A stretch of DNA of 64,000 bases from Lepidodermella squamata (Eukaryota; Animalia; Gastrotricha). The notes under the pieces were generated by a model. That model was not told the DNA's origin and searched no databases. It saw only the letters and a program-made list of their open reading frames with translations. The stretch lies in the NCBI GenBank assembly GCA_047495785.1, contig JBLDXI010000054.1, positions 4,237,812 to 4,301,811 on the forward strand, in the 5' to 3' direction. Shown one piece after another: positions 5,417-64,000 of the stretch (position 1 is the first letter of the stretch; each line of letters begins with the position of its first letter). A program made the position numbers and the translations under genes.

Positions 5417-7273
5417 GACGGTTTCTTAATAAAGTCTCCAAACTGTTTCAACAACAGCCAGCTCAATCGGCGCCAGCGCGCGCTGCGCCAAAGGCGGGCA
5501 AGCAGAAGCGCAAGCGCGACCCGAACAAGCCGAAGCGTGCCATGTCGGCCTACTTTCACTTTCTTCAGTATTGCCGCGAACAGGCCCAAAAGGAGGGCAA
5601 GTCGTTTGCCAAGGTATGTCTCCAACCACAACCTCGAAAAAACAACAACGTTCAATTTACTACTAACTGCTATGCTTCAATATTTCAAACTGCGCGCTCT
5701 CGCGTTTTTTTCTCGTGCGCGCTACTTATCATCGCTCGTACTATCATAGCCTGTCTTAATCGCAGCTAATGCCGCCTGTGGTATTTATGGTCAAAGCTGT
5801 TGTAATAGTGTAGTAGTGGGAAGGGTTTCTCTCGACGTGTGCCAGCTATAGGGCCGGTCTGGCCACTGCGCATAATTATTGTTTTTGCGCGCGCGCAGGC
5901 GATGAACGCGCAGGTCGGTGTTTTTCTACGCACCAGTGTATTGTCGTTCATTATCGCTTTCATATTACTAGCGCGATGTATATATATCCTCCTCATCATC
6001 ATCATTGCTATACTTCATTCACTCATTCATTCATTTTTTCCTCCGTCTGTTTCTAGATCGCTGAATTCAGTAAGCTATGTGCGGAACGGTGGCGGAACAT
6101 GAATGGCGAGGAAAAGTTGCCGTTCGAGGAACGGGCGAAAGAAGACAAAGGCAGATACGATCGAGAGGTTTGTTTCAGCTGTTCAGCCGTAATTGAGTAT
6201 GACCTAATTTTTTTCCATCACATTAATAGATGAAACTTCACAAACCAGTAAGAGATCCCAACAAGCCGAAAAAGCCTCAAAGCGCATATTTCCTGTTCCT
6301 CGCGCGGTTTCGCGAAGAAATGAAAGAAAGTGGTATGACTCATCGTGACATTCTGAAACACGCCGGCGAGCGGTGGAATCAAATGAACGAGGAAGAGAAG
6401 CATCCGTTCCAAGTGGACGCGGAACGGGGCAAGCGGGCGTACGACCAGCAAATGATCGAGTTCAACCAGAAGCGCATGCAACAGCAGCAACAGGAGCGTC
6501 GCGAGGCGGCGCAGTCGACAAGTGCCCAACAGCCGCAGCAAGCGCATAGCGGCGCCGCGCACGGCCACGTCGCACGGCCGAACCAGTCACAACCGGCGCA
6601 CCAACAGCAGCAGCAACACCAGCAGCAGCAGCAACAACAACAGCAGCAGCAGCAACAGCAGCAGCAACAAGCGCAGCAACAGGCCCAGCAAGCACAGCAG
6701 CAGGCCCAACAGGCGCAACAACAAGCCTTCTACAACCAGAACGCCCAGGGGCAGAACGGAGTGCCGCAAGGCGCCGCCGCGATGTTCCCGTTCGGCGGTC
6801 TGCCCATGTCGCAATTCTCTCCGGCGCACCTGCAACAGATGGCGACCGGGTACCTCGGCTACGGCTCGCCACCCGCGACCGGCTACGGCGCGACAGGCCT
6901 GCCCTCGTTACACAACATGATGACCATGACCCAACCCCAACAGCAACATCACCAACAACGATCGCCCCCCGGCGCAGTGCCGGGCCAGCAACAACAAATG
7001 GGTGCTGTTCAAGTCGATATGCGTAAGCTCAGCTTTCCTTTTTCTTAGAAATTTACGAAGGGAATTTTTGGAGAGCTCCCATGAATCGTTAGTGGATTAC
7101 GCGAAATCGTCTTGAAAATAATTATATGATAGGTTCGAACCTATTTTGAGACAACTTTACCTGTGTCTCTTTAGACTGATTTTATTGCAAGCAAACCAAT
7201 TAAGGAAATAGATACCTTGAAGTTACCTTGAATAATATTTTTTTTATTTATGCTTTCAGATGGAGCCAGCTAA
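5417..7273 (+). CDS. HMGB/DSP1-like protein with two HMG boxes and a Gln-rich C-terminus (5' start exon not identified)
   Basis: Box A: [16 protein letters not shown]...|[37 protein letters not shown]. Box B: [16 protein letters not shown]...AGERWNQM. PolyQ at ~6600-6725. Probable last exon 7260-7273. Confidence 0.85.
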
Positions 7274-16994: not shown

Positions 16995-19900
16995 ATGAGC
17001 TCCTACCGGTCTGCCACGCTGGGCAGTCAAGGTATTCAGATGGGTACTTTGCGCACCGACGATTACAGGTTTGTTGCGTGTAAATTCTGCCGCAAAATAT
17101 TGCATGATAATTGGATTTTTAGGCGTGCTCTTACGCCCCGCGTCGACGTTGACGCAGATGCCGAGACGAGAGCTGCTGAGTATCGCAATAACGGGAACGA
17201 AGGAAACTTAGATGGTCTCAGGCAGGAGCTTATCATGGATGAACATAGAGTCCCGGTGGACGAGCTTTATGCCAGATACAGCACCGATCAAGTCAGCGGT
17301 TTATCATCTGAGCAAGCAAGGGTGTATCTCAACCGTGACGGGCTCAACGAGTTGACTCCTCCCCCAGAAATTCCTGAAGTTCTTAAATTTATGAAACAGC
17401 TTTTTGGAGGGTTTCAAATTGTGTTATGGGTGGGATCTATCGTTTGCCTTGCTGCGTATATTCTTCAGGTATTGTCAGGCATGATTGATAAATAGATTAA
17501 TTTATAATGTCTTCAAAATTTAAAGGTGACAAATTACGATCATCCGCCTCCAGACAATTTCTACATGTTCATTGTTCTTGCTGCAGTAGCTACCGTAACT
17601 GGAGTTTTCTCGTATTTTCAGGTTCGCATTCATTTACTTGTGACTAGAGGCTTTCGACAACAATACTATCACGCTTTCATTTTATAGGAATGGAGATCCT
17701 CCAAAATTTTGAACTCCTTCCGTAGCTATATTCCTCAATTCACGGTTATCATTCGTGACGGAAAACGTGAGCAAATCAGAGTTGAAGAGCTTGTCGTGGG
17801 TGACTTGGTAGAGATAAAAGCTGGAGATCGAATTCCCGCGGATATTCGACTTATTACTGCCGACCAGTTGAAAGTAGACAATTCGTCTCTAACTGGAGAA
17901 GCTGATCCGCAGTCGCGATCGCCTGATTACACAAATGAGAACCCGCTTGAAACCAAGAACCTGATTTTCATGTCCACGTACTGCGTCGAGGGAAGTTGCC
18001 GAGGCATTGTCATTCGCACCGGAGATCGAACGGTTTTCGGAAGGATCGCGAATCTTGCTTCGGGAGTAGATACACGTTCTACGAAAATCGCAAAAGAGAT
18101 TCGTTATTTCATTGTCATCGTAACGGGTAAGTGTTGTTAATATCACTTGTTTATTCGTTTAATATCAAGTTCAATCTTCCAGTCTTTTCATTCCTTCTTG
18201 GCTGCACTTGGTTTCTGATTGCATTTTTGTTGCAATATTTCTGGTGGGATGCGTTCATGTACCTCATCGGTTTGATGGTGGCTCATATTCCGCAAGGAAT
18301 TCTGACGACACTGACAGTAAGTTCCTGATCTTTAACTTTTTTTACAGACTTACAACTTTTGTTAATAAGGTATGCCTGTCGCTAACTGCGAAACGTATGG
18401 CACGTCGAAATTGTCTGGTCAAAAACCTTCAGGCTGTTGAGACATTGGGTTCAGTTTCGTGCATTTTGACCGATAAGTCAGGCACACTAACTCAGAACAG
18501 TTTGGCCGTTCAACATTTGTGGTTCGATTTGAAAACTCATGACGTCGAGCTGAATGAACAAGAAACTGCGCCTTATGCAAACACTCCGACTTATCTTGGC
18601 TTGCTGCGTGCGGCATGTCTTTGCAATAACGCCGAATTCAAACCTCATCAAGCCAGTGTGCCGGCTATGGTAAAATTACACTTTTACAAATGAAGCTAAG
18701 TAAATATATTTGTAAATGTTTTTTAGCGTCGAGAAGTTATTGGGAAAGGAGCCGAAGGAGCGATTTTGCGTTATACTGAGCTAATTTTAGGCGACAGCGT
18801 TGCTGAGCGTGAGAGATTCCCGAAAGTTGCAGAGGTAGCATTCACGTCATCTTCAAGATACCAACTGTCGATTCACGAGCTGCGCACTGAGGGATCGCGC
18901 TATTTACTGGTCATGAAAGGCGCCCCGGAGAAAGTTCTAGACAAGTGTCAAACGATGCTCCTATCAGACGAGCGCAATCAACCGATAACAGTTCAAATAA
19001 CTGACCGAGATCGCCGTGCCGTTTATGATGCCTGTGAGGAATTGGGTAGTCAGAGTGAGCAGATATTGGCGTTCGCCGATCTTGACTTGCCTCCGGCGAA
19101 ATTTCCGCCTGGATTCAATTTTAAAGTTCCATCAAGTGATCCGCCATCAGGAGCTAACTTTCCCGAAGCCGGCTATCGCTTTTTAGGACTTGTTTCGATG
19201 ATTGACCCACCGAGAGCAACCGTCCCCGATGCCGTCAGGAAATGTCGTGACGCTGGAATACGCGTGATTATGATCACTGGGGACCATCCTGCCACCGCCA
19301 AGGCCTTGGCTAGGAAAGTCAATATCATCTCGGAGAGCAGCGAAACAGTCGAAGAAATCGCAACGCGGCGTGGCATTCCTGTGGCTAACGTCAATGCCGA
19401 CGAGGCCAAGGCTTGCGTTATTCAGGGGCATGAGTTGCGCGAAATGGGTCAGCTGCTGGACGAATTCCTGTTGCGACACGAAGAAGTGATTTTCGCCCGC
19501 ACTTCGCCGTCGCAGAAAATTCTGATAACCAGTTCTTGCCAGCGTATTGGTCATGTTGTGGCAATCACGGGCGATGGTGTTAACGATGCTGTTGCGCTTG
19601 CGAAAGCGGACATTGGCATTTCAATGGGAATCACTGGCTGCGATATTAGCAAACAAGTTGCAGATGTCGTCCTCTTGGACGACAATTTCGCATCGATCGT
19701 TGCCGGTGTTGAAGAGGGTCGTCTTATCTACGACAACTTGAAAAAGACAGTCGCATATTCTATCACTTCGAACATCCCTGAGATGGTGCCTTTCATAATG
19801 TGGATCGTTGCTGATATGCCTATTTTCATCAGTACCCTGACTATTTTGTGTATTGATTTGGGAACTGACTTGCTCCCAGCTGTTTCCTTCGTTTACGAAA

Positions 19901-20620
19901 AGTCAGAAGCTGATTTAATGAAACGCAAGCCGCGCAATCCAAAGACTGACAAACTGATCAACGAACGAATGTTGGCATTCTCGTATTGTCAAATGGGTTT
20001 CATGCAGACGGTTGCTGCGTTTTTTGCAGCGTTTGTTGTCATGACCGAATTCGGGTTTTGGCCAACACGTCTGATTGGCCTTCGTCGGGAATGGGACTCG
20101 CCTGGCATTAACGACGTCGAAGACTCTTATGGTCAAGAATGGGTTAGTTATTCTGCCTCCACTATTCCCTCTTTTTGATTGGTGTTATTTTTGCTGTAGT
20201 CGATTTCCCAACGAGCAAAACTCAAGTTTTACGCCTTTTCAGCCTATTTCGTAGCGATAGTAGTTTGCCAATGGGGTAACCTGCTTGCCTGTAAAACTCG
20301 CCGCCAATCGTTGTTCCGCCACGGCATCAAATGGTAGGCACTTTTGATTGGCTAAACAGCGTATATTTATTTCAATAACTAGGAACTATGTAATGCTGTT
20401 CGCGCTCTGCTTCGAAACCATCCTAGCCGTTTTCTTGTGCTATGTTCCGGGAATGCAGACTGCTTTCCAGCTGATGCCGATTCGTTTCGAATGGTGGCTG
20501 CCTGCGCTTCCCTACGCCGCTTTTATCCTGATATTTGACGAGGGACGGAAGTTTTTCCTGCGACGGCAAGACCCCGACGCCATCGGACATGGCTTTGTTT
20601 ACAGAGAAACGTACTACTAG
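16995..20620 (+). CDS. P2C-type ATPase (Na+/K+-ATPase alpha-like), divergent, multi-exon
   Basis: Motifs [79 protein letters not shown]; C-terminal RETYY. Confidence 0.95.
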
Positions 20621-49373: not shown

Positions 49374-50119
49374 AGCAGGTATTCAGCTGCGATGTTGACC
49401 CTACACGTGACAGATGACTAATTTACCACCTACCACGCTTCGCTCAATACTGAAAGCAGGTGTTCTGTTTCTTCAACTAGCTATTGTAATGAGTTGTGTA
49501 GAGTTGTAGGTTACAACTTGAACAATGAAGCAAGACTAATCCGATTATATTTTCCACTTATGACGATTCTAGTTTTTTGGTTAAATGAATTAAAGTATGT
49601 CTGAATTTTCCTTCTTTTTTTACCTGGTGCACTCACTTTGACGAAGATCTTGCCATTTATCATTCGAGCTTGGTTGAGCACTTGCAAGAAATCATTCTAT
49701 TCTTCACGAAAAACAACTTGAAATTCGATAAACTTGGAGAAAGCGTGAAACTGCCACGCCAGGTCAGGAAACTGAGAGATTTTTGAGGCCACGCCTGAAT
49801 GGCTTGTATACACTTTCACAAATTACCTAATTAATTCATAATTTCAAATACCAAGATTATCATGAAAACGCATTTAGTATCTGCCTAATTACTCAGCACG
49901 TGGGAAAATTGATAGGGAGCCGAAATTGATAACGCCAGCGGGTCGGGGCATGGTTTGGGTTTGCTACAGAGGCATTTAACGAGGTATTGGTTTTTTGCGC
50001 TCTATGGCGCCACGTGAATTTTACGGGTGTGAAATAGCAGCTGCTAATGACGAAGGTGAGCTTATAACCCCGACTCTTTAATGCCGCCACTTCAATTCAC
50101 TTACCTAAAGCTTTCAAAA

Positions 50120-50803
50120 ATGGTCGCTATAGAGAAGCTGATCTTTTCAATTTTGTTTATTGGCTATGCTTCTAGTGCAACAATCGGAAATGCCAGCAAA
50201 ACTGTCGAATGGGCTGATGCCTACTGGGATTGCGTTGATCTGGAGTGCTCGCAACGAGTGCCAGTCGGAACACCCCAGAAAGAATTTCAGTGCGCTCAAT
50301 TCGTAGCCCGAGCTCTAGCTGCAGGTGGCTTCATACCAAGACTGGGCCCTCTTGACCCTATCAACTCTTATTGGAACTACAAATTCAAAGGAGAAAAGTA
50401 CTGCCTGACGTGCCCAAGTAAACACGGCCCGAACTTCGTGACTCTGAAAAAGGGTCTAGCTGAATTATTGGCTGATATGGGTTGGAAATTATGCCAGACT
50501 TGCGAACCGGGGCAATGTCAAAAAAATGTGGAAAGGACAATGGTTAATACAGGAGAGGTCGTTATAGTGGACGAGTACTGTACGGGTCAGAAATGCGACT
50601 TGAAGACATCGCGGGATTGTGTTGGAGCGGCTAGTGTGATTTTTGCGACTGGAATGCGGCATGCAGCACTAGGCGTTGGACCGGGTGAAATCAGTTCGCA
50701 TAACAATGCGCAGAATCATGCTGACTATTCGATTTACAAAAATTACAGTGCTATCTATATTCCGCCTTCCGCCAAAGTTTTGATCTCGGTCACAATGTTG
50801 TAA
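50120..50803 (+). CDS. Intronless secreted Cys-rich protein with a putative amidase (Amidase_6 / NlpC-P60-like) domain
   Basis: Signal peptide MVAIEKLIFSILFIGYASSA; VEWADAYW; QCAQFVARALAAGG (candidate catalytic Cys); RHAALGVG...SHNN (candidate catalytic His). Confidence 0.7.
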   Translation: MVAIEKLIFSILFIGYASSATIGNASKTVEWADAYWDCVDLECSQRVPVGTPQKEFQCAQFVARALAAGGFIPRLGPLDPINSYWNYKFKGEKYCLTCPSKHGPNFVTLKKGLAELLADMGWKLCQTCEPGQCQKNVERTMVNTGEVVIVDEYCTGQKCDLKTSRDCVGAASVIFATGMRHAALGVGPGEISSHNNAQNHADYSIYKNYSAIYIPPSAKVLISVTML

Positions 50804-50818
50804 CACTACTGTGGACTA

Positions 50819-50886
50819 TTGGGTTGGGTTAGGGTTAGGGTTAGGGTTAGGGTTAGGGTTAGGGTTAGGGTTAGGGTTAGGGTTAG
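50819..50886 (+). repeat. Interstitial telomeric tract 1: (TTGGG)2(TTAGGG)9TTAG
   Basis: Directly visible; G-rich strand on + indicates the chromosome end lies to the right. Confidence 0.97.
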
Positions 50887-51319
50887 TTTCTTATTGAATA
50901 CCAGACGGGTCAATTATGAAATACCCCGGCAGAATTGGTCCTGGCCACAAAGACATGACCTTTGCCGGTTAAAATAATTAGGTTTAACGTGATCATTTTG
51001 TTTGATCGATTAAAACCCGTGGTGATAATTACCCATAGCCAATAGACTTGTTCACTGAGTGACTCAGTTACCCACTGTCATTGGATACGTTCATTATCAA
51101 GGCAGAGGTGAGTCTCCACCAGAAGTAGGACAATTACTCACAATCCTTGACTTGTTCACCACCCGGAGGCAGTTACCCACTATCTTGGATGTTTTCATCG
51201 TCACTAGACCGATACCCATCTTTGAATAAGTTGAGTAAAAGAGACGAAGAACTATAGAGGTTTGCCAATAATCAGACCGGTTTCGCTACTTGGCTAAGGT
51301 AGCTCATCAGTGATTTTGG
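50887..51319 (-). mobile_element. Remnant of a different hammerhead-bearing telomeric retroelement between two telomeric tracts
   Basis: 433-bp segment with a hammerhead at its distal edge and an internal imperfect direct repeat (GACTTGTTCAC...CAGTTACCCACT). Confidence 0.6.
51265..51319 (-). ncRNA. Type I hammerhead ribozyme
   Basis: Minus strand: AATCA-CTGATGA-GCTAC-cttagccaa-GTAGC-GAAA-CCGGTC-TGATT. Stem I, core, 5-bp stem II, short palindromic stem III, GUC cleavage site. Confidence 0.88.
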
Positions 51320-51433
51320 GGGTTAGGGTTAGGGTTAGGGTTAGGGTTAGGGTTAGGGTTAGGGTTAGGGTTAGGGTTAGGGCTAGGGTTAGGGTTAGGG
51401 TTAGGGTTAGGGTTAGGGTTAGGGTTAGGGTTA
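51320..51433 (+). repeat. Interstitial telomeric tract 2: 18 hexamers (one CTAGGG variant at 51383)
   Basis: Directly visible; its last 10 nt are shared with the retroelement terminus. Confidence 0.97.
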
Positions 51434-52398
51434 ATTAGTAAGCTGCGGTCCGCCTGTATTTTGTTTTGCGCAAGGTGATAAGTAAAAGCCTGCCAGCCCT
51501 TCGTAACGTTGGTGAGCAAGTCAGGGCTGAGCATGGCGCGTTTCATTTCGTTGCAGGCGCATTGAAATTGTTCGTAGATCGCCGGCCAGTAGATGTTGCT
51601 CGACTTGCGCAGGACTCGTAGCACGCTGTTGCTGCTCGCGACAGTGTTGAAGACCCGCGACGTTTGGGCCGCTCTGTCCGACGGATGGCAGTAGTTTGCT
51701 GCTTGGCGTGCATCGGTGAACGCACTTTCGAGAGCTTGCTCGTGTCCTTGCATGGATTTATGACGTATCTCGGAAACAACATTGTAAAAAAGCAAATCAA
51801 CGATGCCCTGAGTGCTAGCTTCGAACCGGTGCTCGCGCGGGAAAAACTTCTCAAGCACTGGCCGGAGTGCCTTCTCGTGAGCGGTGGTGGGTCTCTCGTT
51901 TTGAGGTTTGGCGTAGTCTTCACTGAAGTTGGCTGTGGCGAGCTTGGCTAAAATGAAGAAATGATGAATAAAATTGTTGAGTTTCTCGCGGAAGCGATCG
52001 AGGAGATCTTGTCGATGTTCCCTCGCTCGACGTTGCCCTTCTGCTGCTGCCTTAGAAGGTAGCTGCCTGTAGTCCGTTGAGTCTTGCGGTCGCTTCGTAC
52101 CATCCGCGTGCCGACGGTCTGACTGAGCGTTCGAACCGTGCGAGCGACTGGAGCGGCCGTGCGTAGCACCCTCGTGCGAACGGTAAGATCGAGTGTTCGA
52201 ACTGGACGCTGCTGCGGAGACTGTCTGTTTCGAGCGGCTTTGATGACGATCGCGCCGTTCTTGTTGATAGGGCGGATTGTGACGACTCGAATTGTAATAG
52301 ACGTAGCGGAAGCGGCCAAAGATGGCCCGTCCCGGGCGGTCGTTGTTAATTTCTGTAAACCCGTTGTTATTAGAAACAAAACGGTTACGGTTAGACAT
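51431..52398 (-). pseudogene. 3'-truncated ORF1 copy (pseudo-LTR-like) running into telomeric repeats
   Basis: Matches the ORF1 N-terminus up to LLINPN (one visible L/R difference). The NP dipeptide run is translated CCCTAA. Confidence 0.85.
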
Positions 52399-52407
52399 AA
52401 TGAGATT

Positions 52408-52446
52408 TATTGGTAGACCGGTTTCACTATTTCTTCAGTACCAATA
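52408..52446 (-). ncRNA. Minimal type I hammerhead ribozyme (copy 1)
   Basis: Minus strand TATTGGTA-CTGAAGA-AATAGT-GAAA-CCGGTC-TACCAATA; 8-bp stem I. Confidence 0.85.
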
Positions 52447-53176
52447 TCATACTTCTGATAGAATTATAACGAGTGACATTATTGTGACAGCGCTATGATA
52501 ACACCGTACCAGGTGCGTGTGCCTCGGACTATGTTAGGCGCAGCGGATTAGGATTACAAGGTGTTGTTTCGCGCACACGTGTTACTAAGTTCAAGTTAAC
52601 TACGGCAGGTGTGCGTCTAGGTGTGCGCACTATAGCGGATTTAGCGCACAGATGTTGTGGCCACTACTTGTTAATCGGTGATTCTAGCCAGATGGGTAAC
52701 AAGGTGTGCTACTAGGCTGGCGAGGCCTTGATGACGAGCTAACGTGACATCTGTGCTGTTGAGAGACGACAATTACAATGATGAAGATGACCAATAGAAG
52801 ATTGACAGCTGACGCAAGGCGTTATTGCCGGCGACATCAAGGTATTGAAAGCAATAAAAGTCATAAAACAGGATATGCCGATTCTAAGGTCGTTATCGAC
52901 TTTGGATCTCGCTGCGGGTTACTGGTTGATACCAGGATGGCTTGGCCGCCGTGGTCGTGTGCGACTATGACTCGCTGACGTCCAGAACATTAGACCTCGC
53001 TGCGGGTTACTGGCCGATACCGCGTTGAACAGGCTATAAAACATGAATGGAGAAACATATAATACTGCGTAATGGTGGTAATTAATCTAATGAATTAATT
53101 AAGAATAATTAATAAACGGTCGGTAGCTTTGTTGCTACTCTTGACATCGTCGCTGGCTACTGGTCGATTGGTTCGG

Positions 53177-55003
53177 CTAGCAGTCTTTCGTTCGGCAGAG
53201 TTGCTTGACAACGCTTGGACCGAGTCGGGTGACGAGACGAATGCGTCGCCGGCGTGCGATGTCGTACAGTGGCTGTAGTGGCCGAACGAACTTCGTTTCG
53301 ACCGGTGGTCGCCAATCTTGTTGGTAGCGAAAGTTGTCGACTCGATTGCGTAGGAACGGCCAGTCTTGACCTTCGCAACTTGTGATGACGTCGTGGGCGA
53401 GCGCAAAAACATCTGCGTCGACGTAGCCGTACTTGGACGCGGAACTGGCGAGGCTAAAAATGGCAGAACACAAGTCTTCTGTATTATTGCAAATTCTTAA
53501 AAAGTTTAAAATGCGCCCTGTGACTGCGGCCCGGAGAGTCGATTCTGGGTGATTGGAGTCAGCGTGTAAGAGAGGCAACGAGTTCATGGGCTTGAAGTAA
53601 ACGCCGGTTCTGATGGAGCCATCGGGGTACTTGCTCAGGCGGACGTCGAGAACATTCGCACGCTCGGAGCTGATCTCGACTTCGAGCTTTATACGTGGAT
53701 GTAGTGCGCCGTATTCGTTGCCTAGCGTGACTGCGGCCTCTTGAGTGGTGCAGATTGCGAAGACGTCGTCTCGATACCGTTTGAACAACATCACGTCGGT
53801 TTGGCGTTCGACCAGATCGCGCTCGAGCACATAGAGGAACGCGTCCGCTACGACTGGGGCACTGTTGGAGCCCATCGGAATTCCGTGCACCTGACGATAC
53901 TGAATGCCTGAAAAATAGAAAATGTTTGAATTAAGTGTTATTTCGAGCATTGCGACGACGAGGTCGCGTTCGGGTGCGGTTCCGATTGCGTTCTCGTCCA
54001 ACATGGTCTTGATCGCTGCGATTCCTTCTCCAATCGGTACGTTGGTGTACAAGTCGCTCACGTCTGCGGTAAAGAACGTGACGTCGCACCCGCTTGAGTC
54101 GATTGCGCGAACAGCGTGTAGTAGGTCGATGGTAGACGAGGCACAGGTAGTCATGAACCGGTTGAGCGGTTTGCAGTAAGCTGCGGCGACCTTGTCTGCG
54201 GCGGCGAGAGCTGTGCCCAAACAGTCGACAATCGGGCGAATTTTCGGTAGACCATCTACGTCAAATGCCTTGTGCATTTTTGGTAAAAAATAAATATGAC
54301 GATCGCGGGTTGGCTCGAGATCGAGCCCGCGTAACAGCTTGCGTTGTGCGGCTGTACCGGTCGCCATAATGCGATCGACGAGAGTCTTCATTGCTTCGAG
54401 GCCTCGCTTCTCTTCTGATTCTTCGGCGTGCACATAGTTCGCTGTAGTGAGATGTTTGAGCGCCATTTTCGAGTAGTTCGCCTTTGACATGTAGACCATC
54501 GCTGCACCTTTGTCAGATTTCTTGAATACGCCGTCTTTGCGGAGGGCGCGTAATCGTCGTAGCTGTGGGTCGTCGACGATGGGACCGAGCCGTACTGTGC
54601 GAGCTGGCTGTGCGTGGCGGATAACGACTTGTCCGTGGATCCCGATAATCGGACCAACGAAGCGCTTTGAGAACGCTACAGAGGGAACCTTGACGTCGAG
54701 GCCGTGGTCGGGACGAGGGACGACGGTTGCGCCAAGGAGATCTGAAATGACATTAACACAGGCAATTTTATCTTTTTTCGTGAAATTAATGATTTTAAGG
54801 CCACGCTCGAGTGCCTGTTTCTCGGCTGGCTGGAGAGTTCCCGTCAGGTCAACGACGGACGGTAGAGAACAGCGATGCAGCGTCCCGTACGCTCCGTTTT
54901 GGACTAGGGATGGGATGGCCCTGAGCCCGAGCGATCCCGCGAAACCGCGACGCGATGTCTGCGTGTCTGTCTCCTTTTTCGTGCTTCTCGCGGATGTGTG
55001 TGA
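53177..55003 (-). CDS. Penelope-like reverse transcriptase (no endonuclease). Frame open from 55003; first ATG only at 54499
   Basis: VVDLTGTLQPAEKQALERGLK, KSDKGAAMV, YFLPKMHK, RPIV, TADVSDLYTNVP, QVHGIPMGS, RYRDD, LDVRL, YFKP..LHADSNHP. Ends after the thumb region. Confidence 0.93.
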   Translation of the reverse strand, partial: SHTSARSTKKETDTQTSRRGFAGSLGLRAIPSLVQNGAYGTLHRCSLPSVVDLTGTLQPAEKQALERGLKIINFTKKDKIACVNVISDLLGATVVPRPDHGLDVKVPSVAFSKRFVGPIIGIHGQVVIRHAQPARTVRLGPIVDDPQLRRLRALRKDGVFKKSDKGAAMVYMSKANYSKMALKHLTTANYVHAEESEEKRGLEAMKTLVDRIMATGTAAQRKLLRGLDLEPTRDRHIYFLPKMHKAFDVDGLPKIRPIVDCLGTALAAADKVAAAYCKPLNRFMTTCASSTIDLLHAVRAIDSSGCDVTFFTADVSDLYTNVPIGEGIAAIKTMLDENAIGTAPERDLVVAMLEITLNSNIFYFSGIQYRQVHGIPMGSNSAPVVADAFLYVLERDLVERQTDVMLFKRYRDDVFAICTTQEAAVTLGNEYGALHPRIKLEVEISSERANVLDVRLSKYPDGSIRTGVYFKPMNSLPLLHADSNHPESTLRAAVTGRILNFLRICNNTEDLCSAIFSLASSASKYGYVDADVFALAHDVITSCEGQDWPFLRNRVDNFRYQQDWRPPVETKFVRPLQPLYDIARRRRIRLVTRLGPSVVKQLCRTKDC

Positions 55004-57266
55004 TCAGACCATTGATTGAGCAGCTCTTGCCGACGTGGCCGCATCGTTTGCCGCTCGGTAGCTTGAAAGCGCACGACCACTTGCCGTTGTGAAACTCGAC
55101 GAGTATCGACGGATCGCGTATCTTTTCTTTCTTCCACCATTCGCGGGTGAACTCTGCTTTGCTCAAGTTCTTCTGTATGGCGTAGTCTTGCTTTGATAGC
55201 GTGGTCGTCGTATCACCCTGCTCTTGACGGACCGACTGAGCGTTCGAACCGTGCATCGGTGGGTTGTGCGCAGGCGGTCGCGATGCCGGTGCCAGGCGTT
55301 TGAGACACGTTCCGGGTTGCCCGTACATTTGTTGCGCCGAGATCGCTTTGACGACGGCGGGCTTCTTGGACGGCGCCGGAAGTTCTGTTGGTGACTTGTC
55401 TTTCGGGCTGGTGGCACGAGCTCGCTTGGTGGGCACCGAGGCGTTTGGCGCACCTGGTCGCGGAGCGTTCTGCGAGACCGCGTTGATCGCTTCACCGAAG
55501 AACGAGGCGACCGAGCTGACATCTGAAATAGAATTGCAATTATTAAAACGAGATTCGACATTGGCTGCAGCTGCTGCTAGCGCGGTGTCGCTGGCACTGT
55601 CGATCGGTGAAGCGTCCTTGCTCGGAGTCTGAGGCAGAGGCGCGGACGTGGGCGTTAACTGGGCTGCTGTCGATTTGTCGGCAGTGACCGTTTGTGGAGT
55701 AGCCGGGCGGGCTACATTGATAGTCGTTGAGAGGTCGGCGGTCGCCGCTGAATCGCGGCTGCCACCGTTCTTAGTAACCAAGTTGCTAGCTTCAGAAGTT
55801 GACCGAGCGGTAGTCGACGCTGAACCGCGACTGTCAACGCTCTTTGAGACCAAGTTGCTAGCTTCAGAAGTTGACCGAGCGGTAGTCGACGCTGAACCGC
55901 GACTGTCATCGCTCTTTGAGACCAAGTTGCTAGCTTCAGAAGTTGACCGTGCGGGAATCGAGGCCAAATCGCGACCGAGACCTCTCTTCGGTACCAGTGC
56001 GTTGATCTGAGCGGTTGAACGTGCGGAAATCCAGGTCGAATCGCGTTCTTCTGTGGTGAGCAAGCCCCAATCACCCGGGCTCGGATGGCCAGTCTGAGCG
56101 GTTGAACCGGGAGCCGCCTTGGGTGTCGGTGGTAACGCTTGACGAGCTGTTTCTGATTGACCTGTCGGCGTAACCGGATTGACGGCCGGGTCGCTTACGA
56201 CCATCGGCGACGAAGACTGAATGGTGTCGTGCGCTTCAACCGTTACGTTGACAGGTGCTTCCCTTGGGGAGGCATGGACCTGAGAAAGAGAGTTAGGGTT
56301 AATTAGTAAGCTGCGGTCCGCCTGTATTTTGTTTTGCGCAAGGTGATAAGTAAAAGCCTGCCAGCCCTTCGTAACGTTGGTGAGCAAGTCAGGGCTGCGC
56401 ATGGCGCGTTTCATTTCGTTGCAGGCGCATTGAAATTGTTCGTAGATCGCCGGCCAGTAGATGTTGCTCGACTTGCGCAGGACTCGTAGCACGCTGTTGC
56501 TGCTCGCGACAGTGTTGAAGACCCGCGACGTTTGGGCCGCTCTGTCCGACGGATGGCAGTAGTTTGCTGCTTGGCGTGCATCGGTGAACGCACTTTCGAG
56601 AGCTTGCTCGTGTCCTTGCATGGATTTATGACGTATCTCGGAAACAACATTGTAAAAAAGCAAATCAACGATGCCCTGAGTGCTAGCTTCGAACCGGTGC
56701 TCGCGCGGGAAAAACTTCTCAAGCACTGGCCGGAGTGCCTTCTCGTGAGCGGTGGTGGGTCTCTCGTTTTGAGGTTTGGCGTAGTCTTCACTGAAGTTGG
56801 CTGTGGCGAGCTTGGCTAAAATGAAGAAATGATGAATAAAATTGTTGAGTTTCTCGCGGAAGCGATCGAGGAGATCTTGTCGATGTTCCCTCGCTCGACG
56901 TTGCCCTTCTGCTGCTGCCTTAGAAGGTAGCTGCCTGTAGTCCGTTGAGTCTTGCGGTCGCTTCGTACCATCCGCGTGCCGACGGTCTGACTGAGCGTTC
57001 GAACCGTGCGAGCGACTGGAGCGGCCGTGCGTAGCACCCTCGTGCGAACGGTAAGATCGAGTGTTCGAACTGGACGCTGCTGCGGAGACTGTCTGTTTCG
57101 AGCGGCTTTGATGACGATCGCGCCGTTCTTGTTGATAGGGCGGATTGTGACGACTCGAATTGTAATAGACGTAGCGGAAGCGGCCAAAGATGGCCCGTCC
57201 CGGGCGGTCGTTGTTAATTTCTGTAAACCCGTTGTTATTAGAAACAAAACGGTTACGGTTAGACAT
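54849..57266 (-). CDS. PLE ORF1, 805 aa: R/S-rich N-terminus, helical core, S/T/P-rich linker, C-terminal BED-like zinc finger
   Basis: Uninterrupted ORF; WSCAFKLPSGKRCGHVGKSCSINGLITHIREKH. Confidence 0.85.
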   Translation of the reverse strand: MSNRNRFVSNNNGFTEINNDRPGRAIFGRFRYVYYNSSRHNPPYQQERRDRHQSRSKQTVSAAASSSNTRSYRSHEGATHGRSSRSHGSNAQSDRRHADGTKRPQDSTDYRQLPSKAAAEGQRRAREHRQDLLDRFREKLNNFIHHFFILAKLATANFSEDYAKPQNERPTTAHEKALRPVLEKFFPREHRFEASTQGIVDLLFYNVVSEIRHKSMQGHEQALESAFTDARQAANYCHPSDRAAQTSRVFNTVASSNSVLRVLRKSSNIYWPAIYEQFQCACNEMKRAMRSPDLLTNVTKGWQAFTYHLAQNKIQADRSLLINPNSLSQVHASPREAPVNVTVEAHDTIQSSSPMVVSDPAVNPVTPTGQSETARQALPPTPKAAPGSTAQTGHPSPGDWGLLTTEERDSTWISARSTAQINALVPKRGLGRDLASIPARSTSEASNLVSKSDDSRGSASTTARSTSEASNLVSKSVDSRGSASTTARSTSEASNLVTKNGGSRDSAATADLSTTINVARPATPQTVTADKSTAAQLTPTSAPLPQTPSKDASPIDSASDTALAAAAANVESRFNNCNSISDVSSVASFFGEAINAVSQNAPRPGAPNASVPTKRARATSPKDKSPTELPAPSKKPAVVKAISAQQMYGQPGTCLKRLAPASRPPAHNPPMHGSNAQSVRQEQGDTTTTLSKQDYAIQKNLSKAEFTREWWKKEKIRDPSILVEFHNGKWSCAFKLPSGKRCGHVGKSCSINGLITHIREKHEKGDRHADIASRFRGIARAQGHPIPSPKRSVRDAASLFSTVRR
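55735..55950 (-). repeat. 72-bp (24-aa) in-frame tandem repeat, about 3 copies, in ORF1
   Basis: RSTSEASNLVSKS.DSRGSASTTA; anchor ACCAAGTTGCTAGC at 55777, 55849, 55921. Confidence 0.9.
56292..56301 (-). other. Internal telomere-complementary 10-mer TAACCCTAAC (priming / template-like site)
   Basis: Equivalent position minus 4868 is 51424-51433, exactly where the proximal copy fuses to (TTAGGG)n. Confidence 0.85.
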
Positions 57267-57275
57267 AATGAGATT

Positions 57276-57314
57276 TATTGGTAGACCGGTTTCACTATTT
57301 CTTCAGTACCAATA
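57276..57314 (-). ncRNA. Minimal type I hammerhead ribozyme (copy 2)
   Basis: Identical to 52408-52446. Confidence 0.85.
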
Positions 57315-58044
57315 TCATACTTCTGATAGAATTATAACGAGTGACATTATTGTGACAGCGCTATGATAACACCGTACCAGGTGCGTGTGCCTCGGACTAT
57401 GTTAGGCGCAGCGGATTAGGATTACAAGGTGTTGTTTCGCGCACACGTGTTACTAAGTTCAAGTTAACTACGGCAGGTGTGCGTCTAGGTGTGCGCACTA
57501 TAGCGGATTTAGCGCACAGATGTTGTGGCCACTACTTGTTAATCGGTGATTCTAGCCAGATGGGTAACAAGGTGTGCTACTAGGCTGGCGAGGCCTTGAT
57601 GACGAGCTAACGTGACATCTGTGCTGTTGAGAGACGACAATTACAATGATGAAGATGACCAATAGAAGATTGACAGCTGACGCAAGGCGTTATTGCCGGC
57701 GACATCAAGGTATTGAAAGCAATAAAAGTCATAAAACAGGATATGCCGATTCTAAGGTCGTTATCGACTTTGGATCTCGCTGCGGGTTACTGGTTGATAC
57801 CAGGATGGCTTGGCCGCCGTGGTCGTGTGCGACTATGACTCGCTGACGTCCAGAACATTAGACCTCGCTGCGGGTTACTGGCCGATACCGCGTTGAACAG
57901 GCTATAAAACATGAATGGAGAAACATATAATACTGCGTAATGGTGGTAATTAATCTAATGAATTAATTAAGAATAATTAATAAACGGTCGGTAGCTTTGT
58001 TGCTACTCTTGACATCGTCGCTGGCTACTGGTCGATTGGTTCGG

Positions 58045-59289
58045 CTAGCAGTCTTTCGTTCGGCAGAGTTGCTTGACAACGCTTGGACCGAGTCGGGTGA
58101 CGAGACGAATGCGTCGCCGGCGTGCGATGTCGTACAGTGGCTGTAGTGGCCGAACGAACTTCGTTTCGACCGGTGGTCGCCAATCTTGTTGGTAGCGAAA
58201 GTTGTCGACTCGATTGCGTAGGAACGGCCAGTCTTGACCTTCGCAACTTGTGATGACGTCGTGGGCGAGCGCAAAAACATCTGCGTCGACGTAGCCGTAC
58301 TTGGACGCGGAACTGGCGAGGCTAAAAATGGCAGAACACAAGTCTTCTGTATTATTGCAAATTCTTAAAAAGTTTAAAATGCGCCCTGTGACTGCGGCCC
58401 GGAGAGTCGATTCTGGGTGATTGGAGTCAGCGTGTAAGAGAGGCAACGAGTTCATGGGCTTGAAGTAAACGCCGGTTCTGATGGAGCCATCGGGGTACTT
58501 GCTCAGGCGGACGTCGAGAACATTCGCACGCTCGGAGCTGATCTCGACTTCGAGCTTTATACGTGGATGTAGTGCGCCGTATTCGTTGCCTAGCGTGACT
58601 GCGGCCTCTTGAGTGGTGCAGATTGCGAAGACGTCGTCTCGATACCGTTTGAACAACATCACGTCGGTTTGGCGTTCGACCAGATCGCGCTCGAGCACAT
58701 AGAGGAACGCGTCCGCTACGACTGGGGCACTGTTGGAGCCCATCGGAATTCCGTGCACCTGACGATACTGAATGCCTGAAAAATAGAAAATGTTTGAATT
58801 AAGTGTTATTTCGAGCATTGCGACGACGAGGTCGCGTTCGGGTGCGGTTCCGATTGCGTTCTCGTCCAACATGGTCTTGATCGCTGCGATTCCTTCTCCA
58901 ATCGGTACGTTGGTGTACAAGTCGCTCACGTCTGCGGTAAAGAACGTGACGTCGCACCCGCTTGAGTCGATTGCGCGAACAGCGTGTAGTAGGTCGATGG
59001 TAGACGAGGCACAGGTAGTCATGAACCGGTTGAGCGGTTTGCAGTAAGCTGCGGCGACCTTGTCTGCGGCGGCGAGAGCTGTGCCCAAACAGTCGACAAT
59101 CGGGCGAATTTTCGGTAGACCATCTACGTCAAATGCCTTGTGCATTTTTGGTAAAAAATAAATATGACGATCGCGGGTTGGCTCGAGATCGAGCCCGCGT
59201 AACAGCTTGCGTTGTGCGGCTGTACCGGTCGCCATAATGCGATCGACGAGAGTCTTCATTGCTTCGAGGCCTCGCTTCTCTTCTGATTC
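58045..59289 (-). pseudogene. 5'-truncated second RT copy
   Basis: Same RT translation, cut at the inversion junction downstream of the DKG motif. Confidence 0.85.
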
Positions 59290-62200
59290 CTCGACGTCAA
59301 GGTTCCCTCTGTAGCGTTCTCAAAGCGCTTCGTTGGTCCGATTATCGGGATCCACGGACAAGTCGTTATCCGCCACGCACAGCCAGCTCGCACAGTACGG
59401 CTCGGTCCCATCGTCGACGACCCACAGCTACGACGATTACGCGCCCTCCGCAAAGACGGCGTATTCAAGAAATCTGACAAAGGTGCAGCGATGGTCTACA
59501 TGTCAAAGGCGAACTACTCGAAAATGGCGCTCAAACATCTCACTACAGCGAACTATGTGCACGCCGAAGAATCAGAAGAGAAGCGAGGCCTCGAAGCAAT
59601 GAAGACTCTCGTCGATCGCATTATGGCGACCGGTACAGCCGCACAACGCAAGCTGTTACGCGGGCTCGATCTCGAGCCAACCCGCGATCGTCATATTTTA
59701 TTTTTTACCAAAAATGCACAAGGCATTTGACGTAGATGGTCTACCGAAAATTCGCCCGATTGTCGACTGTTTGGGCACAGCTCTCGCCGCCGCAGACAAG
59801 GTCGCCGCAGCTTACTGCAAACCGCTCAACCGGTTCATGACTACCTGTGCCTCGTCTACCATCGACCTACTACACGCTGTTCGCGCAATCGACTCAAGCG
59901 GGTGCGACGTCACGTTCTTTACCGCAGACGTGAGCGACTTGTACACCAACGTACCGATTGGAGAAGGAATCGCAGCGATCAAGACCATGTTGGACGAGAA
60001 CGCAATCGGAACCACACCCGAACGCGACCTCGTCGTCGCAATGCTCGAAATAACACTTAATTCAAACATTTTCTATTTTTCAGGCATTCAGTATCGTCAG
60101 GTGCACGGAATTCCGATGGGCTCCAACAGTGCCCCAGTCGTAGCGGACGCGTTCCTCTATGTGCTCGAGCGCGATCTGGTCGAACGCCAAACCGACGTGA
60201 TGTTGTTCAAACGGTATCGAGACGACGTCTTCGCAATCTGCACCACTCAAGAGGCCGCAGTCACGCTAGGCAACGAATACGGCGCACTACATCCACGTAT
60301 AAAGCTCGAAGTCGAGATCAGCTCCGAGCGTGCGAATGTTCTCGACGTCCGCCTGAGCAAGTACCCCGATGGCTCCATCAGAACCGGCGTTTACTTCAAG
60401 CCCATGAACTCGTTGCCTCTCTTACACGCTGACTCCAATCACCCAGAATCGACTCTCCGGGCCGCAGTCACAGGGCGCATTTTAAACTTTTTAAGAATTT
60501 GCAATAATACAGAAGACTTGTGTTCTGCCATTTTTAGCCTCGCCAGTTCCGCGTCCAAGTACGGCTACGTCGACGCAGATGTTTTTGCGCTCGCCCACGA
60601 CGTCATCACAAGTTGCGAAGGTCAAGACTGGCCGTTCCTACGCAATCGAGTCGACAACTTTCGCTACCAACAAGATTGGCGACCACCGGTCGAAACGAAG
60701 TTCGTTCGGCCACTACAGCCACTGTACGACATCGCACGCCGGCGACGCATTCGTCTCGTCACCCGACTCGGTCCAAGCGTTGTCAAGCAACTCTGCCGAA
60801 CGAAAGACTGCTAGCCGAACCAATCGACCAGTAGCCAGCGACGATGTCAAGAGTAGCAACAAAGCTACCGACCGTTTATTAATTATTCTTAATTAATTCA
60901 TTAGATTAATTACCACCATTACGCAGTATTATATGTTTCTCCATTCATGTTTTATAGCCTGTTCAACGCGGTATCGGCCAGTAACCCGCAGCGAGGTCTA
61001 ATGTTCTGGACGTCAGCGAGTCATAGTCGCACACGACCACGGCGGCCAAGCCATCCTGGTATCAACCAGTAACCCGCAGCGAGATCCAAAGTCGATAACG
61101 ACCTTAGAATCGGCATATCCTGTTTTATGACTTTTATTGCTTTCAATACCTTGATGTCGCCGGCAATAACGCCTTGCGTCAGCTGTCAATCTTCTATTGG
61201 TCATCTTCATCATTGTAATTGTCGTCTCTCAACAGCACAGATGTCACGTTAGCTCGTCATCAAGGCCTCGCCAGCCTAGTAGCACACCTTGTTACCCATC
61301 TGGCTAGAATCACCGATTAACAAGTAGTGGCCACAACATCTGTGCGCTAAATCCGCTATAGTGCGCACACCTAGACGCACACCTGCCGTAGTTAACTTGA
61401 ACTTAGTAACACGTGTGCGCGAAACAACACCTTGTAATCCTAATCCGCTGCGCCTAACATAGTCCGAGGCACACGCACCTGGTACGGTGTTATCATAGCG
61501 CTGTCACAATAATGTCACTCGTTATAATTCTATCAGAAGTATGATATTGGTACTGAAGAAATAGTGAAACCGGTCTACCAATAAATCTCATTATGTCTAA
61601 CCGTAACCGTTTTGTTTCTAATAACAACGGGTTTACAGAAATTAACAACGACCGCCCGGGACGGGCCATCTTTGGCCGCTTCCGCTACGTCTATTACAAT
61701 TCGAGTCGTCACAATCCGCCCTATCAACAAGAACGGCGCGATCGTCATCAAAGCCGCTCGAAACAGACAGTCTCCGCAGCAGCGTCCAGTTCGAACACTC
61801 GATCTTACCGTTCGCACGAGGGTGCTACGCACGGCCGCTCCAGTCGCTCGCACGGTTCGAACGCTCAGTCAGACCGTCGGCACGCGGATGGTACGAAGCG
61901 ACCGCAAGACTCAACGGACTACAGGCAGCTACCTTCTAAGGCAGCAGCAGAAGGGCAACGTCGAGCGAGGGAACATCGACAAGATCTCCTCGATCGCTTC
62001 CGCGAGAAACTCAACAATTTTATTCATCATTTCTTCATTTTAGCCAAGCTCGCCACAGCCAACTTCAGTGAAGACTACGCCAAACCTCAAAACGAGAGAC
62101 CCACCACCGCTCACGAGAAGGCACTCCGGCCAGTGCTTGAGAAGTTTTTCCCGCGCGAGCACCGGTTCGAAGCTAGCACTCAGGGCATCGTTGATTTGCT

Positions 62201-63983
62201 TTTTTACAATGTTGTTTCCGAGATACGTCATAAATCCATGCAAGGACACGAGCAAGCTCTCGAAAGTGCGTTCACCGATGCACGCCAAGCAGCAAACTAC
62301 TGCCATCCGTCGGACAGAGCGGCCCAAACGTCGCGGGTCTTCAACACTGTCGCGAGCAGCAACAGCGTGCTACGAGTCCTGCGCAAGTCGAGCAACATCT
62401 ACTGGCCGGCGATCTACGAACAATTTCAATGCGCCTGCAACGAAATGAAACGCGCCATGCGCAGCCCTGACTTGCTCACCAACGTTACGAAGGGCTGGCA
62501 GGCTTTTACTTATCACCTTGCGCAAAACAAAATACAGGCGGACCGCAGCTTACTAATTAACCCTAACTCTCTTTCTCAGGTCCATGCCTCCCCAAGGGAA
62601 GCACCTGTCAACGTAACGGTTGAAGCGCACGACACCATTCAGTCTTCGTCGCCGATGGTCGTAAGCGACCCGGCCGTCAATCCGGTTACGCCGACAGGTC
62701 AATCAGAAACAGCTCGTCAAGCGTTACCACCGACACCCAAGGCGGCTCCCGGTTCAACCGCTCAGACTGGCCATCCGAGCCCGGGTGATTGGGGCTTGCT
62801 CACCACAGAAGAACGCGATTCGACCTGGATTTCCGCACGTTCAACCGCTCAGATCAACGCACTGGTACCGAAGAGAGGTCTCGGTCGCGATTTGGCCTCG
62901 ATTCCCGCACGGTCAACTTCTGAAGCTAGCAACTTGGTCTCAAAGAGCGATGACAGTCGCGGTTCAGCGTCGACTACCGCTCGGTCAACTTCTGAAGCTA
63001 GCAACTTGGTCTCAAAGAGCGTTGACAGTCGCGGTTCAGCGTCGACTACCGCTTCGGTCAACTTCTGAAGCTAGCAACTTGGTTACTAAGAACGGTGGCA
63101 GCCGCGATTCAGCGGCGACCGCCGACCTCTCAACGACTATCAATGTAGCCCGCCCGGCTACTCCACAAACGGTCACTGCCGACAAATCGACAGCAGCCCA
63201 GTTAACGCCCACGTCCGCGCCTCTGCCTCAGACTCCGAGCAAGGACGCTTCACCGATCGACAGTGCCAGCGACACCGCGCTAGCAGCAGCTGCAGCCAAT
63301 GTCGAATCTCGTTTTAATAATTGCAATTCTATTTCAGATGTCAGCTCGGTCGCCTCGTTCTTCGGTGAAGCGATCAACGCGGTCTCGCAGAACGCTCCGC
63401 GACCAGGTGCGCCAAACGCCTCGGTGCCCCACCAAGCGAGCTCGTGCCACCAGCCCGAAAGACAAGTCACCAACAGAACTTCCGGCGCCGTCCAAGAAGC
63501 CCGCCGTCGTCAAAGCGATCTCGGCGCAACAAATGTACGGGCAACCCGGAACGTGTCTCAAACGCCTGGCACCGGCATCGCGACCGCCTGCGCACAACCC
63601 ACCGATGCACGGTTCGAACGCTCAGTCGGTCCGTCAAGAGCAGGGTGATACGACGACCACGCTATCAAAGCAAGACTACGCCATACAGAAGAACTTGAGC
63701 AAAGCAGAGTTCACCCGCGAATGGTGGAAGAAAGAAAAGATACGCGATCCGTCGATACTCGTCGAGTTTCACAACGGCAAGTGGTCGTGCGCTTTCAAGC
63801 TACCGAGCGGCAAACGATGCGGCCACGTCGGCAAGAGCTGCTCAATCAATGGTCTGATCACACACATCCGCGAGAAGCACGAAAAAGGAGACAGACACGC
63901 AGACATCGCGTCGCGGTTTCGCGGGATCGCTCGGGCTCAGGGCCATCCCATCCCTAGTCCAAAACGGAGCGTACGGGACGCTG
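59290..63983 (+). mobile_element. Inverted copy of the same PLE (RT 59290-60814, hammerhead, ORF1 from 61593) with three 1-bp insertions
   Basis: 59569-63983 is the reverse complement of 54878-59289, with extra bases near 59697, 63053 and 63428. Confidence 0.8.
61545..61583 (+). ncRNA. Minimal type I hammerhead ribozyme (copy 3)
   Basis: TATTGGTACTGAAGAAATAGTGAAACCGGTCTACCAATA; predicted cleavage after C61575. Confidence 0.85.
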
Positions 63984-64000
63984 ACTCTCACGAGATGTGT
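63984..64000 (-). other. Probable untrimmed PacBio barcoded-adapter sequence (technical artefact)
   Basis: ACTCTCACGAGATGTGT is the reverse complement of ACACATCTCGTGAGAGT, recalled from memory as barcode bc1003 plus T overhang. It breaks homology with the element abruptly at the window end. Confidence 0.8.

Follow-up and report, generated by a model that had tools for sequence, protein, structure and literature searches.

An endonuclease-free Penelope-like retroelement family attached to TTAGGG telomeres in the gastrotrich Lepidodermella squamata

Penelope-like elements (PLEs) without an endonuclease (EN-minus) are the closest retroelement relatives of telomerase. A family of such elements is described here from the gastrotrich Lepidodermella squamata (host assembly of 121 Mb in 151 contigs), starting from a window of 64,000 nucleotides that forms the last 64 kb of contig C54, so that position 64000 is the contig end. 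The general kind, an EN-minus PLE attached to telomeres, is already known from Athena and Coprina. In the Terminons of bdelloid rotifers, telomeric repeats directly follow a hammerhead at the 3' terminus, and head-to-tail chains of elements are truncated by telomeric repeats (PMC6431247). The present family resembles Athena/Terminon in having a reverse transcriptase (RT) without a GIY-YIG domain, two open reading frames (ORFs), a length in the 4-6 kb range and an animal host, and in having a hammerhead and a 3' end that sits on the G-rich strand by way of reverse-complement telomeric repeats (Gladyshev & Arkhipova 2007 and Arkhipova et al. 2017, as summarised in PMC8557442 and PMC6431247); it likewise forms terminal chains, arranged head-to-tail, in which telomere tracts separate 5'-truncated elements (PMC6431247). 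Like Coprina, which is found in fungi and has similar elements in protists and plants, it is EN-minus, telomere-associated, hammerhead-bearing and resident in a host with TTAGGG-type repeats. The explanation favoured here, and considered likely, is that this is a young EN-minus PLE family that adds itself to chromosome ends by priming on TTAGGG overhangs.

What is new is the TTAGGG host repeat, a pairing motif that sits within ORF1 at a distance of about 1 kb from the hammerhead, the absence of helix II from that hammerhead, and an RT clade without annotated members. By their descriptions, Athena/Terminon elements differ in each of the first three respects: their hosts carry TGTGGG/TGAGGG repeats, their telomeric repeats adjoin the hammerhead, whereas here a single 10-nt motif lies within ORF1 some 975 nt downstream of it, and helix II is missing only from the hammerhead described here. 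Coprina differs in that its hosts are not animals, and in fungal PLEs the hammerhead is a monomeric variant that is stable and whose helix III is long (PMC4209133), unlike the minimal metazoan type of helix III found here. With the endonuclease-bearing (EN+) PLEs (Penelope/Poseidon, Neptune and Nematis) this family shares the DKG and other RT motifs, insertion as partial tandems ('pseudo-LTR', long terminal repeat, structures), inverted 5'-truncated copies lying next to the element and a repeated part that contains hammerheads; those elements, however, carry a C-terminal GIY-YIG domain and insert genome-wide, whereas the present family falls in an EN-minus-like clade.

From position 50821 to the end of C54, minus-strand elements alternate with TTAGGG tracts (Table 1). 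The two head-to-tail units, with a tandem period of 4,868 bp, differ at 3 of 2,996 compared positions, two of which lie at the edge of an inversion, and the single amino-acid change is L/R in ORF1. The antisense element abuts the G-strand tract with its 3' end at 51434 and has its 5' end distal; read on the sense strand, (TAACCC)n follows the element's 3' end, which indicates that the cDNA was primed by the G-rich strand. Contigs of run X1 span the joint between units as well as that between telomere and element and give independent support for the tandem part of the array. In these respects the preliminary description of the window was borne out: it had reported near-identical head-to-tail units with one amino-acid difference, a 3' end on the G-rich telomeric strand with the 5' end distal, and an endonuclease-free PLE attached to exposed telomeric G-strands. 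Its proposal to map copies relative to contig ends was also followed. Copies of at least 98% identity are confined to the outermost 20 kb or so at four contig ends (the ends of C54, C21 and C46 and the start of C20), at all four with the 5' end outward, and interstitial matches are short, old fragments of about 70% identity.

The joint between the two units consists of 10 nt, TAACCCTAAC, which are complementary to the telomeric G-strand over 1.7 telomere repeats and which also serve as the ORF1 codons Asn-Pro-Asn. Preceded by C or T, that is as (C/T)TAACCCTAAC, the motif matches the template of vertebrate telomerase RNA (TER), 5'-CUAACCCUAAC-3', in both sequence and register. The preliminary description had read the unit as hammerhead, ORF1 and RT; a unit of that kind with a telomere cap between copies does not hold, as the joint is a conserved internal motif, not a telomerase-added cap, and the unit as delimited there is a permuted one. 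The complete ORF1 of 805 aa, running from 57266 down to 54849, takes its first 322 codons from the 3' end of unit 2 and the remainder from the 5' end of unit 1. It is also open across the unit joint on C21 and C46, as 843-aa frames, and in a subfamily on C57 with 75% RT identity, where the continuous frame has 701 aa. In five unit-length environmental contigs from relatives (L036, L037, L038, L040 and L044), whose RTs are 37-60% identical to that of the element, a single ORF1 opens a few nt past the hammerhead and contains TAACCCTAAC. The motif is conserved at the nucleotide level in seven lineages spanning 37-75% RT identity. All telomere attachments start exactly at it, on C54, on C46, in the 75% subfamily (C21 and C57), and in contig L039, at whose end a TTAGGG-type tract meets the ORF1 motif; the joints between telomere and 3' end are identical on C54 and C46, while the telomere joints of C21 and C20 and the tandem joint of C57 are placed from search coordinates only.

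These joints bear on a model in which the units are separate full-length insertions made one by one, the 10 nt being a short telomerase cap and the open frame a coincidence. Athena/Terminon chains are usually described in that manner, with 5' ends capped by short telomeric stretches (PMC6431247), and true 5'-truncated, telomere-capped copies of the present family exist on C21. The joint is, however, the same on C54 and C46, the ORF1 frame continues across it in three arrays as well as in a second subfamily, and the unit-length contigs of distant relatives hold the motif within one continuous ORF1, so that insertion one by one is close to refuted. Since ORF1 is continuous over the joint, the functional unit extends from hammerhead to hammerhead, and the coding unit, whether as a circle or in tandem, comprises the hammerhead-like motif, ORF1, the RT, a 0.73-kb spacer and the next hammerhead. 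Since the attachment site lies inside ORF1, integrated copies are circularly permuted and each attachment splits ORF1. The motif lies about 975 nt downstream of the predicted hammerhead cut site (52416), and the stretch between them encodes the N-terminal domain of ORF1.

The ORF1 protein consists, in order, of a basic tail (residues 1-110, predicted to be disordered), a helical domain (residues 116-320, confidently predicted by AlphaFold), the Asn-Pro-Asn codons, a low-complexity linker rich in Ser, Thr and Pro, and a CCHH zinc finger. The helical bundle predicted for the N-terminal domain had no fold match in the PDB (best E 0.8), and Pfam searches with ORF1 and with the ORF1s of relatives gave zero matches. 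The linker contains three 72-bp (24-aa) repeats at 55741-55975. The finger, encoded near 54981-55078 at the C-terminal end, is conserved among relatives, in agreement with the zinc-finger ORF1 proposed earlier.

The RT carries the hallmark motifs of PLEs (DKG, RPIVD, ADVxDLYTNVP, HGIPMGSNSAP and RYRDD), and in alignment A1 residues K161, D164, K165 and G166 are invariant together with RPIVD, HGIPMGSNSAP and RYRDD. The protein is about 560-610 aa long, with a conserved N-terminus that begins near 54930, and ends about 200 aa past motif C. RVT_1 is its sole Pfam domain; no Pfam match to GIY-YIG was found on the RT or ORF1, at either the N- or the C-terminal side, and a six-frame genome-wide search with PF01541 had no hit within the window or on the arrays of C21 and C46. 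The same search recovered an RT-adjacent GIY-YIG on C24, which serves as a positive control for the method. That locus (C24:4309548-4310960, plus strand) has an RT match of 27% identity followed by GIY-YIG in one 617-aa frame and is a canonical EN+ PLE in the same genome. The earlier claim of a PLE-type RT that stops without a GIY-YIG domain therefore stands. A sequence-profile search of the PDB with the RT returned weak matches only, to retron and group II RTs. The AlphaFold model of the RT (pLDDT 87.4), compared with the PDB by Foldseek, gave TERTs at all of ranks 1-8 (best E 2.6e-9). The RT is of Penelope type and, as judged from the predicted structure, closest in fold to TERT.

About 20 members of the RT clade were found among 5.8 billion protein clusters, all of RT-only length and sharing the family's layout; they come from unannotated Logan, JGI or ENA assemblies, and none has an identifying name. 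In the exhaustive library an E-value gap from 1e-81 to 1e-54 separates them from the bulk of PLEs, and the representative library yielded 10,820 PLE-like relatives. In a tree of 152 RTs, computed with FastTree only and without named references or an outgroup, the clade received a support of 100 and lay beside other EN-minus-like lineages, which include the genome's other terminal families; the EN-minus-like group as a whole (29 rows, support 98) has no YIG motif and stands apart from a mostly EN+ side. The nearest ESM Atlas clusters are RT-only proteins and are commonest in Rotifera. The suggestion of an undescribed lineage accordingly holds as far as a clade without named members in the databases searched, which may yet belong to Athena or stand apart from it. 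Five of eight metagenome contigs from relatives (L038 and L041-L044) are terminally redundant with a period of 4.2-5.0 kb and were therefore assembled from tandem or circular templates.

The host is a TTAGGG animal, as had been stated: (TTAGGG)5 occurs 590 times in the genome against 0 for the reversed control, contig C13 starts with more than 500 bp of CCCTAA, and several Wnt genes are present (best 275 bits). A check for a host TERT, also suggested earlier, found a Telomerase_RBD match on C21 (63.9 bits, above the Pfam cut-off); a Pfam search for TERT_C gave zero matches in this genome and equally in control genomes. The other EN-minus-like PLE families of the genome are also terminal and have longer single ORFs. 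These data bear on the idea, put forward in the preliminary description, that the family co-maintains telomeres as a domesticated or mutualistic system analogous to HeT-A/TART. Its exclusively terminal location, the stacking of several families at many contig ends and the purifying selection on the RT (dN/dS between two subfamilies = 0.10) would fit such a role. The family also shares with HeT-A/TART/TAHRE of Drosophila the head-to-tail terminal arrays with the 5' end distal. Those elements, however, are non-LTR retrotransposons of the jockey clade in a host without telomerase, whereas here the telomerase RNA-binding domain gene persists and TTAGGG tracts cap every element. Host dependence has no support, and a selfish element in a safe niche fits equally well. 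Co-maintenance is therefore regarded as improbable.

On C46 (L034:4886-5032; C46:1809885-1810031) the telomere tracts are broken by a 16-nt piece, TTGGTAATAGTTTAAT, which matches the extreme 3' end of another terminal family and looks like an aborted priming event re-capped by telomerase.

Hammerhead motifs were located by pattern search, and that of the element is backed by covariation. A search of 50000-64000 against Rfam (E<=1) returned neither a hammerhead nor any other family. The element's motif has the full catalytic core and a helix III of the minimal metazoan type (2 bp and a CG loop), with a cut predicted after C52416, 17 nt upstream of the ORF1 ATG (52398). In alignment A3 the core CUGANGA...GAAA, the A15.1-U16.1 pair and H17 are invariant. 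Across nine lineages all eight pairs of helix I show changes on both sides, with 90% of cells paired, and the covariation score is 0.81; shuffles score 0.18, with 0 of 500 attaining the observed value, and slid controls score 0.11-0.15. Helix II is replaced by an A/U-rich linker of 4-6 nt in eight of the nine lineages, and only the most distant relative, L041, keeps it, as a 3-bp stem. The hammerhead-like motif is, on this comparative evidence, a conserved RNA structure; of the hammerhead claimed earlier, the core with its covarying helix I stood, while helix II proved to be missing and Rfam gave no match. In the published 'min-HHRs' of PLEs it is helix III that is dropped, and helix II is long (PMC4209133); the present motif, which lacks helix II and keeps a minimal helix III, differs from them. 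Such a motif may cleave, perhaps only as a dimer, by analogy with minimised hammerheads. Synthetic minizymes are hammerheads of this sort that act as dimers.

The favoured mechanism, which we regard as likely in its general form, would run as follows. The 3' G-overhang of a chromosome end would pair with the internal RNA motif and prime reverse transcription by the element's RT; priming by the overhang would make an endonuclease unnecessary. As the motif lies about 1 kb past the start of ORF1, copying has to pass the hammerhead and exceed one unit length if an intact ORF1 is to result. Such over-length copying implies one of two templates. One is a multimeric transcript that reads through a tandem array; the other is an RNA of unit length, closed into a circle once the hammerhead has cleaved it, which would be copied by rolling-circle reverse transcription. 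Synthesis would halt at variable points, after which telomerase would cap the new end with TTAGGG, and the two together would yield the stacks of elements separated by telomere tracts. The likeness to telomerase (TERT and TER) lies in the RT fold and in a motif that pairs with the same G-overhang; it differs in that the motif would be used for alignment only, with synthesis continuing along a 4.9-kb RNA, and in that the element's protein has no TEN or RBD domain.

The rolling-circle form of this mechanism is offered tentatively and, taken by itself, is rather doubtful. In it, a hammerhead-released unit RNA would be closed into a circle by a host RNA ligase, the G-overhang would anneal to the TER-like motif, and the TERT-like RT would travel round the circle to give head-to-tail multimers that start and end at the ORF1 motif. 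Retrozymes and hammerhead circular RNAs (Cervera & de la Pena) offer a parallel, with tandem hammerhead-bounded units and, in the 433-bp element described below, a passenger-like companion; unlike them, the autonomous element here is 4.9 kb long and protein-coding, and is known from DNA alone.

Several points weigh against addition by end-primed reverse transcription. The element appears in none of the RNA runs, which leaves its transcripts, any hammerhead cleavage and any circles unobserved. An AUG is missing at the place where relatives begin their RT, which leaves production of its own RT in doubt: the RT frame of this subfamily has no AUG before 54499, and the codon aligned to the relatives' RT start is non-AUG in every copy (window position about 54928; L001-L005, L010, L033 and L034), while the sister subfamily and the environmental relatives have their own RT AUG near the ORF1 stop. 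Frameshifting from ORF1, such as the +1 ribosomal shift suggested at first, a non-AUG start or an RT supplied in trans are possible sources of the enzyme. A predicted hammerhead without helix II may be inactive on its own. Contig C54 ends in an inverted copy and not in a TTAGGG tract, and the X1 contigs do not confirm that copy. The identity of the units, finally, could also come from recombination or break-induced replication after a single attachment.

This last point can be extended to a model in which, after rare retrotransposition, the arrays grow mainly at the DNA level, by unequal sister exchange or by break-induced replication resembling alternative lengthening of telomeres. Units within an array are identical (0 differences in 4,320 nt on C46), and the C21 and C46 arrays are only 3 nt apart over 4,320 nt, with C54 differing from both by 0.9%. 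On the other hand, proximal contexts and telomere-tract lengths differ among the four ends, and over-length reverse transcription predicts just such head-to-tail multimers, with the priming motif as their exact start. Growth mainly by DNA-level processes is possible, if on the unlikely side; it is compatible with over-length reverse transcription, and the two are not mutually exclusive.

Unit 2 and the inverted copy meet head-to-head, overlapping by 9 nt and leaving a one-sided loop of 263 nt. Two changes set the inverted copy apart from the other copies: one substitution, and 1 nt inserted at 59696, which disrupts the RT frame. This copy, and perhaps the array length too, may be an artefact, of assembly or of the library, at a repeat-rich contig end, a serious possibility to which we give somewhat less than even weight: its arms are near-identical, the contig ends inside it, none of the X1 contigs bridges the junction at 59289-59297, and the insertion at 59696 is absent from X1. 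The arms do not, however, form a perfect palindrome, given the loop, the overlap, the substitution and the indel; PLE insertions have been described as typically accompanied by inverted 5'-truncated copies (PMC8557442); and the tandem part is independently supported. C21 also ends head-to-head, with a junction structure different from that of C54. There, a sense-strand element filled with satellite (repeats of about 50 bp and about 100 bp) and a 270-bp CCCTAA tract (L033:405-1571; C21:2670404-2671570) face a truncated minus-strand array head-to-head, so that C21 too ends in an inverted chain.

The features of the terminal region are collected in Table 1.

Table 1. Coordinates of features at the end of contig C54 (positions of the window)
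Feature	Position	Strand	Remarks
Unique DNA	up to 50820		Innermost part, before the first telomere tract
Telomeric tract (GGGTTA)11	50821-50886	+	Directly on unique DNA; innermost healed end
Non-coding 433-bp element	50887-51319	-	Sits between two telomere tracts
Telomeric tract (GGGTTA)19	51320-51433	+	Last 10 nt double as the 3' copy of the TAACCCTAAC motif
Unit 1	51434-56301	-	One full 4,868-bp period, motif to motif
ORF1 N-terminal 322 codons of unit 1	51434-52398	-	Stop-free into the telomere tract
Hammerhead-like motif without helix II	52404-52447	-	Predicted cut after C52416
Non-coding spacer	52448-53176	-	RT stop to hammerhead, 0.73 kb
RT open frame	53177-55003	-	608 codons and stop
Complete ORF1, 805 aa	54849-57266	-	Across the unit 2/unit 1 joint
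Internal motif TAACCCTAAC (Asn-Pro-Asn)	56292-56301	-	Unit-to-unit joint and attachment point
Unit 2	56302-59297	-	5'-truncated within the RT gene
Inverted copy	59289-64000	+ (sense)	RT gene interior, then second motif joint (62558-67), to contig end

The 433-bp element is protein-less and lies on the minus strand, with its 3' end joined to the inner telomere tract and, at its 5' end, a canonical type-I hammerhead (51262-51318) that reads AATCA CUGAUGAG, a 5-bp helix II, and CGAAAC CG GUC/UGAUU. One copy of 79% identity lies at C38:907054. The hammerhead head is common to many elements near the ends of C9, C13, C20, C21, C32 and C41, always with the 5' end outward, and the 433-bp element is probably a non-autonomous passenger.

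Further inward, a 240-aa ORF (window 50081-50803, plus strand) stops 17 nt before the innermost telomere tract; Pfam finds no domain in it. Its family comprises at least 8 copies of 43-60% identity, some with stops, clustered on C18 (25-37 kb from its start) and C19, and may be a subtelomeric gene family. The window also contains a Na/K-ATPase alpha-subunit gene (16995-20178, plus strand) with at least 4 exons, gaps of about 70-215 nt and a best database identity of 58%, and an HMG box in a 272-aa ORF (6230-7048, plus strand).

For animal EN-minus PLEs, the literature found covers bdelloid rotifers only, with their non-TTAGGG telomeres. The lineage described here shows the same lifestyle in a TTAGGG animal, with a single 10-nt motif, in the register of the vertebrate telomerase template, within a gene. 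Its natural hammerhead without helix II, conserved by covariation, bears on how minimal working or dimerising hammerheads can be. The system as a whole bears on how TERT-like RTs are primed by chromosome ends, on why PLEs always insert as partial tandems, and on hammerhead-processed circular RNAs as templates. If the rolling-circle version were true, the family would represent a still extant link between retroelement and telomerase, in the form of an RNA that codes for protein and also carries an internal TER-type alignment site.

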